In this document: positions 23,189 to 26,100 of the stretch, in pieces | Position numbering within the stretch: the stretch's first letter is position 1 | How the letters are laid out: each line of letters starts with the position of its first letter | Assembly: GCA_002269645.1 (NCBI GenBank) | Contig: NIVC01002077.1 | Location: 1-64,000, forward strand | Reading direction: 5' to 3' | Origin: Macrostomum lignano | Taxonomy: Eukaryota | DNA length: 64,000 nt | Notes under the pieces: model-generated | The model's database searches: none | Told to the model about the DNA's origin: nothing | What the model saw: only the letters and a program-made list of their open reading frames with translations | Translations under genes and position numbers: made by a program

Positions 23189-26100
23189 ATGGACTCTGAG
23201 ACAGAGTCAGTTGGGATAATTTCTAATCGTCTGCAGAAATACGAGATGATTGAGTCCACTCGTGAGTAACCAAGACTCTGTGCTCCCAGCTGCTGCCTGT
23301 AGATCGGATGTTGCAGTTTGCGGAATTTTTGGTAGCTCATACAGTTCAGGCTATGGATGGGACCAGACACCAGATCCACTGGAATGCAGTGTGATTAGAC
23401 TGTAGATTAGAGTGTGACTAGATGCGGATTAAAATAGTGAGACTAGATGCAGATTAGAGTGTGACTTGATGCATATTAGATATAGTGTGACTAGACGCAG
23501 GCTAGAGTGTGACTAGATGCGATTAGAGTGTGACTAGATGCAGATTAGAGTGTGACTAGATGCAGATTAGAGTGTGACTTGATGCATATTAGATATAGTG
23601 TGACTAGATGAGGATAAGAGTGTGATTAGATGCAGATTAGATATAGTGTGACTAGACGCAGACTAGAGTGTTACTAGATGAAGATTAGAGTGTTACTAGA
23701 TGAAGATTGAAGTGTTACTTGATGCAGATTAGAGTGTGATTAGATGTGGATTAGAATATGACTAGACACGGCCCGATGTAAATATATGCAGTATAAGCTT
23801 TCAAGCGCAGAAGCCCAACCTGCAACCCCGTCACCACTGTAATCGGTCGCACCAAAATCAAGGACCACTAGAGGTTACCGTTGTGTCCATAGTAACAATT
23901 GATCCAGGGATATGAGCATTTAAGGTTTAGCTGCAATCTTGACCGGAAACTTAACATGCAGTGAACTGCATGCCCACCGATCGCCCATCTCTCAGACTGC
24001 CTCCTGCCGGATGCCAGCCAGCCGCCCAGCCAGCAGTCCAACGGCGATGGACCGGCCAGGGACGGGCAGGCGCACCTTCAGCAGCAGTTCCAGCGCGACG
24101 CTGAAGGTCTGGCTACCGCTGTCGCATCTCCCGCAGCCTTCCAGTATCCCAACCCCTGGGTCCGCAGATCCCACCCGACACGGCCGCCTTCAGCATCGCA
24201 ATCGGAGGGCCAGCAGCTGACTGTTGCAGCCGGCGGGACGCCCAGCCTCTTTGAAATTGTTCGCCAGAACTTCATCAGCTATTGCCAGACAACGTCCCTC
24301 CGCGGTGTGCCAAAGATTGTAAAAACCCGAGACCGGCTACTGCGGCACATCTGGATCCTGTTCACCTGCACCTTCTTCCTGGGATGCTTCACCTGCTTGG
24401 CTCTCATCATCAAGCAGTACCTGGCCTATGACGTCATCCACCAGCCCAGGACCGTGCGCAACCACCCGGTGCAGTTCCCCTCCTTCACGGTGTGCAACAC
24501 GCGGCCCTTCTCCCAGGCGGGCATCCAGTACATCCTGGACCGCGGCCTCGTGCTGCCCAAGAACTACTCGCAGTTCGTCATGCAGGCAATGCGCAACACC
24601 GCGGAGAACCAGCGGGGCGTCGGGTTCAACGACACCACCAAGGAGGCGCTCAGCACCATCTTCGAGACCAAGGGCTACTTCGAGAACGTGCCCAGGGGCT
24701 TCGACATCGCGCGGCTGGGCCACACGATTGACCAGACTATTCTGATCTGCGAGACCACCATCCTGGACAAGGACTTCAAGCGGTCGAAGTTCTGCGAGAC
24801 CATCGGCACGTGGACCAGGACCTACGATAACAAATTCCTGAACTGCTACACCTTCACAGCCGACGCCAACAACACGCAGAAGATCCTCACGGTGAGGATC
24901 ATGGCCTACACGAACGAGAGGAACCTCACAAACTGTCCGGACTGCAGCAGCTTCCCGGCCACGCAGGTGTCCGGCCTGCGGGTGCAGCTGCACAACGCTG
25001 GTAACTACCCGGAAGTGCAGGAGGAGGGACTCAACATCCGGCCAGGCAGCCTCACGGAGATCCGCTTCGAGACCAAGGAGTGGGTGATGAAGGAGCCGCC
25101 GCACGGCCGCTGCTCCACTCGGGTGCCGCCGTCCGTGCTGTTCAACGGGGACGCCTTCACCTACAGCTACCAGGCCTGCAAGAAGAAGGTGGGTGGGCGG
25201 GGCGGCCGCTTCTCGGGGTTGGGAGAGGGCGTAGACAGGACCGGGGGCGCTAGGATCAGTTGTTACTATGGATACAACGGTAACCTCTAGTGGTCCTTGG
25301 TTTTGGTGCGACCGATTGCAGTGGTGATACCGGGGGCACCAGCACCACAGGTGATAGGGTGGCCCCCCCCCTTGACCCCCTGTAATGCATATATTTGCTT
25401 GGCCGAGAACTGGCGCTGCATCTCAGCAATGTCACGCCTTTTAACCCTCAATCTAATCAGTTTTTTCCTTGCACTCTCACCCTTCTCACATCCCTCCCTC
25501 TCACCCCTCACTCTCACCCCTCACTCTCAGCCCTCAACCTCACCCCTTCCTCTCACTCCTCTCTCACCCCTCCCTCTCACCCCTCCCTCCCACCCCTCAC
25601 TCTCACCCCTCACTCTCAGCCCTCAACCTCAACCCTTCCTCTCACTCCTCTCTCACCCCTCCCTCTCACCCCTCCCTCCCACCCTCACTCTCACCCCTCA
25701 CTCTCAGCCCTCAACCTCACCCCTTCCTCTCACTCCTCTCTCACCCCTCCCTCTCACCCCTCCCTCCCACCCTCACTCTCACCCCTCACTCTCAGCCCTC
25801 AACCTCACCCCTTCCTCTCACTCCTCTCTCACCCCTCCCTCTCACCCCTCCCTCTCACCCTTTTCTCTATTCAAAACAGTTTCCATTTTCAAGCTGTCTT
25901 CATGAAATTTATTAATTTAAGAGCGCTGCGCAATCAACGCTCGCAAAAACCGGCCGAACCCCTCGGCGTATCCAGGTGGCCTGTTTTCACAGCTCCTCCC
26001 CATCTCTCTCCTCCCCAGCATCCATTAATTCATTATCAACTCCGCCGGGACCGCGCCATCATCTGCATGGCATTCCACCCCAGATATTCCTACGGCTGGT

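Follow-up and report, generated by a model that had tools for sequence, protein, structure and literature searches.

An inverted repeat bracketing exon 2 of a DEG/ENaC channel gene in Macrostomum lignano, probably the by-product of a local insertion

Two complementary 75-nt sequences lie close on either side of the second exon of a channel gene in the flatworm Macrostomum lignano, and they raise the question of whether the pair is a built-in RNA-structure control of channel expression, as a first-pass annotation had proposed, or came to bracket the exon incidentally. We addressed it within the 64,000-nt stretch of contig NIVC01002077.1 that was analyzed (here called the window). The reading that we prefer, with a rough probability of 0.6, is that a local copy was inserted with a target-site duplication, and that it brackets exon 2 incidentally, with a predicted effect on splicing.

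The gene was resolved into three predicted exons on the forward strand. The coding part of exon 1 (positions 23189 to 23261) runs for 24 codons from the ATG plus 1 nt, ends at a GTGAGT donor in phase 1, and has an exact copy at 53130 to 53164 on the minus strand. Intron 1 (23262 to 23995, 734 nt) is filled for the most part by a 22-nt satellite (23388 to 23777, in the tandem-repeat and direct-repeat tables). Exon 2 (23996 to 25188, 1193 nt) encodes the N-terminus, the first transmembrane segment (TM1), and most of the ectodomain and is separated by intron 2 (25189 to 27441, 2253 nt, mostly CT-rich satellite) from exon 3 (27442 to 28215), the last coding exon, which has a phase-0 acceptor and a stop codon at 28213 to 28215. 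Joined together, the three predicted exons give a single clean open reading frame (ORF) of 679 amino acids. Exon 2 matches positions 1 to 301 of the Pfam ASC profile (PF00858) at 2.1e-28 and exon 3 matches positions 309 to 454 at 3.7e-20; with this match along the full length of the profile, the predicted product belongs to the DEG/ENaC family of sodium channels, which is characterized by two transmembrane segments and a cysteine-rich ectodomain. The exon 2 product is 36 to 39% identical to flatworm proteins labeled by their sources as FMRFamide-activated sodium channels. The best database protein, M. lignano A0A1I8FMC4, shares long identical stretches with the window, broken by frame changes; it is a frameshifted, chimeric model of the same channel gene, which places the window in M. 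lignano or a very close relative.

A0A1I8FMC4, the only model of the gene in the database, starts right at the acceptor of exon 2. Spliced-leader trans-splicing at that position was considered and dropped: the acceptor does not match the YTNCAG trans-splice motif, and the terminal ATG of the leader would lie in a different frame from the channel (PMC8629364). The splice sites of exon 2 are predicted ones and fit the M. lignano consensus (a GT[G/A]AG-like donor and a CAG acceptor; PMC8629364) only loosely. When exon 1 is joined directly to exon 3, the frame shifts and a stop follows after 82 codons, which bears out the earlier statement that skipping of exon 2 would join a phase-1 donor to a phase-0 acceptor and truncate the protein.

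The inverted repeat itself was recovered by the repeat search as two arms of 75 nt each, at 23831 to 23905 in intron 1 and 25253 to 25327 in intron 2, which are complementary at 71 of 75 positions (95%) and spaced by 1347 nt. For a 75-mer match of this kind, with up to 3 mismatches allowed, the expectation from shuffled sequences was 0.00. The left arm ends 90 nt (23906 to 23995) before the exon 2 acceptor (AG/AC, in the context CTCAG/AC), and the right arm starts 64 nt (25189 to 25252) after the donor (AAG/GTGGGT, following 25188), so that both lie less than 100 nt from canonical predicted splice sites. Position, degree of complementarity, and both distances thus agree with the first-pass annotation. 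It had also counted an outer 11-bp inverted match (23780 to 23790 with 25386 to 25396) as an addition to the repeat, and this part did not hold up: the match is no better than some 10 other 11-mer matches per flank in the window (E of about 3), and in the second copy of the gene, described below, it is split by a 5-nt indel. A longer repeat extending out to that 11-mer was likewise rejected, as a global alignment of both flanks showed that the homology of the arms ends abruptly at the boundaries of the 75-nt core.

In the sense pre-mRNA, the two arms form an uninterrupted helix of ca. 78 bp with a predicted energy of -148.4 kcal/mol, in which all four mismatches of the DNA become G·U pairs; with -129.2 kcal/mol, the duplex of the antisense strand falls 19 kcal/mol short of this. 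When the 1.5-kb span from 23829 to 25328 was folded, the helix closed the whole exon in both the minimum free energy (MFE) and the centroid structure. All the inverted matches of at least 12 nt between introns 1 and 2 come from the arms. Within intron 1 no stretch of 10 nt or more is complementary to another, within intron 2 such stretches are few and of 10 to 12 nt, and the arms are thus predicted to have no competitor for pairing across exon 2. The satellites of the two introns were considered as an additional source of complementarity and rejected, since they share fewer inverted than direct k-mers and contribute nothing of 12 nt or longer. The structural premise of the earlier reading, a stem across exon 2, is therefore sound as far as folding can tell, the arms being the sole strong intron-intron complementarity.

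How the two arms came to be there is suggested by the sequence around the right one. A perfect 9-bp direct repeat, ACCGGGGGC, occurs on the forward strand at 25240 to 25248 and again at 25329 to 25337, and between the two copies lie exactly 80 bp (25249 to 25328), made up of GCTA, the 75-nt right arm as an inverted copy of the left one, and a T. This segment starts 60 nt past the donor of exon 2. Across the 64-kb window, ACCGGGGGC was found at these two sites and at their two counterparts in the second gene copy only. The probability of a 9-nt direct repeat within 20-nt flanks was 0.0016 when the actual flanks were shuffled and 0.0020 over 30,000 satellite-masked positions of the window. Because this perfect repeat flanks it, the right arm is best read as a discrete insertion of ca. 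80 bp with a target-site duplication, a feature newly described here; the predicted empty site before insertion would read ...GACAGGACCGGGGGCACCAGC... In the 20-nt flanks of the left arm, by contrast, the longest direct repeat is of 3 nt, with no target-site duplication, and the left arm may on this account be the source copy.

The inserted unit was compared with several kinds of mobile sequence. It has no terminal inverted repeats, no poly(A), and no A-rich or simple-repeat tail. Rfam gave no match at E of ≤1 over 23400 to 25800 and none at the gathering score across the whole window, while ARAGORN found no tRNA in the insert (its only calls were spurious tRNA-Pyl ones inside a satellite). 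A known RNA or a tRNA-derived element as the source of the 75-mer was ruled out by these negatives, and a SINE or retroposed small RNA was discarded as well, given that the target-site duplication is present but a 3' tail and a tRNA or Rfam body are missing. Within the 64 kb, searches for the 75-mer (up to 3 mismatches, and blastn-short with a word size of 7) returned the four arms of the two gene copies and no diverged extra copy. A 33-mer scan of metagenome, prokaryote-genome, and viral collections gave 0 matches, which is uninformative for a flatworm sequence.

These results lead us to regard the right arm as more probably a local templated inverted copy of intron 1 sequence, taken in cis across 1.4 kb, than a dispersed mobile element, because the unit carries no hallmarks of an element, has no other copy in the window, and has the same end points in both of its 75-nt copies. 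The 4 + 1 nt of the insert that do not match the copy in intron 1, together with the lack of clear junction microhomology, count against this origin. Templated insertions arise from template switching during replication or break repair, as in FoSTeS/MMBIR or polymerase-theta end joining. The insert resembles their products in being a short inverted copy from ca. 1.4 kb off in cis that occupies a defined site, is flanked by a small duplication, and has some unmatched bases at its junctions; it differs from them in that microhomology is not clear at the junctions and in that 80 bp is long for polymerase-theta. Template switching is accordingly a candidate mechanism, put forward by analogy and from one locus.

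The window also contains a second copy of the gene (copy B, as opposed to copy A above), since it is built as a large palindrome in which ca. 11.6 to 33.96 kb matches the reverse complement of 63.7 to 41.9 kb with 93 to 98% identity. Copy B lies on the minus strand and is intact. Its exon 2 (50548 to 51740) has 10 differences from copy A, 7 synonymous and 3 nonsynonymous, and its exon 3 differs by 1 synonymous change. The right arm (50415 to 50489), together with its duplication (50405 to 50502, with the 9-bp copies at 50405 to 50413 and 50494 to 50502), is identical to that of copy A (0/75 differences), while the left, upstream arm (51831 to 51905) has 3 differences, two of which disrupt pairing. 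The earlier remark that the arrangement is kept in the second copy is thus right about the layout of arms and exon, but its retention tells little, because the copies are ca. 98% identical (about 2% neutral divergence) and form an inverted duplicate. Retention is what such a comparison would be expected to give and is not evidence of selection. The genome of M. lignano and its assembly are indeed redundant and recently duplicated, the species being a hidden polyploid with 180 Mb of assembled blocks of ≥95% identity (PMC5730564; PMC12801592).

The two copies do allow the arms to be dated and their substitutions to be polarized. Before the duplication into copies A and B, the arms already differed at 3/75 positions, and arm divergence is now ca. 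4 to 5%, compared to ca. 2% between the gene copies; because of these older differences, we estimate that the insertion took place about twice as long ago as the duplication and is thus young. Between the copies, the arms differ at 3/150 positions (left, 3/75; right, 0/75), against ca. 2% at synonymous and intronic sites, which suggests that they evolve at about the neutral rate, with no sign of extra constraint. With the right arm as the outgroup, the left arm of copy B has gained an A·C and a U·C mismatch (its sense duplex is predicted at -137.5 kcal/mol), and that of copy A has gained one C>T that leaves a G·U pair. Substitutions compatible with G·U pairing thus make up 4/6 of the inferred events (the three arm differences that predate the duplication plus the single change of copy A) where about 1/3 would be expected, a pattern that could hint at selection for pairing but, with a p of ca. 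0.1, is not significant and is not evidence of selection; it would also fit a C>T mutation bias on the sense strand.

Outside the species, the introns of the Schistosoma, Clonorchis, and Fasciola homologues lie at other positions, and none of their exons is surrounded by inverted matches; from this it appears that the feature is not ancient, and this is all that the comparison with the parasites shows. Inside the window, at least three other, unrelated elements are bounded by inverted repeats, about 1 per 10 kb of unique sequence, and on the strength of these, paired repeats are common in this genome. The others enclose satellite or other noncoding DNA, and the pair described here is the only one in the window that brackets an exon.

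Other origins for the arms have to be weighed against a local copy. The 75-mer could be a dispersed transposon, that is, a short and possibly high-copy element or fragment, in a genome rich in repeats, that inserted twice independently, in opposite orientations, around exon 2. The target-site duplication at the right arm and the abundance of inverted-repeat-bounded elements in the window speak for this; we nevertheless consider it rather unlikely, given the lack of a further copy within 64 kb even at word size 7 and of terminal repeats, poly(A), or any tRNA-like or Rfam signal, the left copy without a target-site duplication although the arms have diverged by only ca. 5%, and the end points common to both copies, which would be unusual for truncated elements. 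Far less probable is that the whole 1.5-kb unit of arm, exon, and arm is a Pack-MULE-like element that captured or delivered the exon. Its form, 75-nt terminal inverted repeats around 1347 nt, would suit such an element, as would the length of the duplication, 9 bp being Mutator-like. But the duplication surrounds the right arm alone, the outer flanks of the unit (…AACCCCG and TACCGGG…) differ, exon 2 is in frame and indispensable to a complete channel ORF extending on into exon 3, and the unit recurs in the window only through the large duplication; the placement of the target-site duplication and the continuity of the ORF led us to reject this origin. The same features mark the distance from MITEs and Pack-MULE-type elements in general, which the locus resembles in its inverted repeats around ca. 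1.3 kb and the 9-bp direct duplication nearby and from which it differs in a duplication that flanks one arm, an interior that is an essential in-frame exon, and the absence of other copies in the window. Least credible of all is a mis-assembly of the repeat or of its second occurrence. A gap of 196 N does sit right where the left, 22-kb palindrome arm ends on its inner side, in an assembly known to be redundant (PMC5730564), yet the repeat is present in both gene copies, each with substitutions and indels of its own, and lies 9 kb from the gap, which may affect the arrangement of the copies but not the repeat.

The remaining alternative concerns function and is the one from which the question started, namely, that selection maintains the stem and through it sets how much linear channel mRNA is made relative to circular or skipped products. 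The geometry is near ideal, competing pairings are absent, and the four G·U mismatches of copy A make the sense duplex the more stable one by 19 kcal/mol. All the same, such a switch is improbable in our view: the repeat appears to be insertion-born and young, its arms change at about the neutral rate, pairing in copy B is interrupted by an A·C and a U·C mismatch, the excess of G·U pairs lacks significance and fits a sense-strand C>T bias too, and conservation is limited to a ca. 98% identical duplicate, with nothing comparable in the distant parasite homologues (whose introns differ anyway). The proposal of a built-in control of channel expression is for these reasons not upheld, and the arrangement is probably a side effect of the insertion and not a switch under selection.

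The insertion of a local copy may nonetheless have consequences for splicing. A piece of ca. 80 bp (25249 to 25328) would have entered intron 2, leaving the 9-bp target-site duplication behind. With both arms within one pre-mRNA, they would zip into the helix of ca. 78 bp with its four G·U pairs and bring the acceptor and the donor of exon 2 together, and some transcripts would then be expected, by the known mechanism of back-splicing, to be diverted to a circle of the 1193-nt exon, to an out-of-frame mRNA joining exons 1 and 3, or to both. The predicted back-splice junction from 25188 to 23996 would read ...CAAGAAGAAG followed by ACTGCCTCCT..., and the predicted skipping junction between exons 1 and 3 would read ...GAGTCCACTC followed by CTGCTACACG... 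The helix would also serve as a double-stranded RNA substrate for ADAR or Dicer. Cotranscription of both arms, back-splicing, skipping, and editing are all predicted steps here. In human and mouse as in fly and nematode, layouts of this kind favor back-splicing, and they are a known target of ADAR (reviewed in PMC5168830), and a planarian flatworm has active, editing ADARs (PMC8797187). Our search of the literature found no work on circular RNA in flatworms, Macrostomum included.

Among known systems, the locus is closest to the intronic complementary sequences that drive circularization, such as Alu pairs in human and mouse, RCMs in C. elegans, and short repeats in Drosophila and in ZKSCAN1 minigenes (PMC5168830). 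It has one inverted complementary arm in each flanking intron, pairing across the exon that dominates in the folds, and canonical predicted splice sites, and it is predicted to be competent for circularizing or skipping exon 2. The single long exon, the proximity of the arms to the splice sites, the strong pairing, and the absence of competitors are all shared with pairs of the Alu or RCM type. On the other hand, the M. lignano unit belongs to no recognizable transposon family and consists of one 75-nt sequence, of which the right-hand copy sits in a discrete 80-bp insert flanked by a target-site duplication; introns 1 and 2 are short, at 734 and 2253 nt, and a circle is only predicted. Mouse Sry offers another comparison, a documented single-exon circular transcript from an exon flanked by genomic inverted repeats that are tens of kilobases long. 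The present gene likewise has inverted repeats on both sides of one exon, from which a circle of that exon is predicted, but its arms are of 75 nt and its circle is hypothetical. Overall, the repeat falls within the class of complementary sequences that flank circular-RNA exons, probably as an incidental member.

A bolder version of these ideas would be that a de novo, lineage-specific regulatory stem, born from a local template-switch insertion, has made a constitutive exon circularizing or skippable, and that selection keeps the helix G·U tolerant in the sense strand, tuning the dosage of a neuronal-type DEG/ENaC channel. We hold this to be a long shot. If it were true, the DNA would still show how a repeat that forms circular RNA was born, something rarely seen. 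As it stands, the result is a well-formed prediction on one locus and not a discovery. M. lignano has working transgenesis (PMC5730564), and if the predicted circle or skipped product exists, the gene would be a clean test case, with one repeat pair, no competitors, and no transposon background, in which one could ask how a newly inserted complementary sequence alters the splicing of its host gene. It would also mean that dispersed transposons are not the only source of such repeats and that small local insertions can create them too.

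Most of the window is made up of a large palindrome, whose arms of ca. 22 kb (11600-33960 and 41940-63700) share 93 to 98% identity and each contain the glutaminase and channel genes, so that every one of these genes is found in two copies. The sole assembly gap in the window, a run of Ns at 33961-34156, lies precisely where the left arm ends on its inner side, and for this reason the head-to-head layout may reflect redundant or homeologous contigs that were joined during scaffolding rather than a true inverted duplication.

Shorter inverted repeats were also found. Two of 51 nt, 90 to 92% complementary (13107-13157 and 15491-15541), enclose a tandem-repeat array, and the pair is duplicated, again with an array between its members, at 61144-61194 and 61899-61949. 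The enclosed array spans 2,333 nt in one copy but only 704 nt in the duplicate, and the whole resembles a terminal-inverted-repeat element whose internal satellite varies in length. ARAGORN called three tRNA-Pyl (cta) genes (13510-13588, 14010-14088, and 61807-61889), all within the tandem-repeat array, which are almost certainly false positives. Separately, a MITE-like element with 47-nt inverted repeats, 87% complementary and ca. 600 nt apart (4411-4457 and 5056-5102), has homology extending outward, with GTGAACTTAAG at either side. It is unrelated to the 75-nt repeat that brackets exon 2 of the channel gene.

Upstream of the channel gene and on the opposite strand are glutaminase (19411-20274, minus strand; Pfam Glutaminase and EF-hand_14) and asparaginase (8150-8668, minus strand) exons, with a copy at 56487-57476. 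Glutaminase and the channel gene are transcribed divergently, across a region that consists mostly of 11- and 22-nt satellites (22000-22930 and 23388-23777).

The UniProt model of the channel gene, A0A1I8FMC4 ("VASt domain-containing protein"; regions 23996-25188, 27442-28215, and 29320-29463), is both frameshifted and chimeric. This prediction begins right at the exon 2 acceptor and leaves out the region of the first transmembrane helix (TM1), while its final 48 residues map to 29320-29463, past the channel stop codon, and are probably part of a neighbouring gene. In contrast, a clean channel ORF of 679 amino acids can be read from the window. Much of intron 2 is a CT-rich satellite (26800-27440, also 25472-25860) with CACTCTCACCCCT-like units of 13, 38, and 50 nt. 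This satellite continues unbroken as far as the exon 3 acceptor at 27441, giving an unusually long pyrimidine-rich tract before the splice site.
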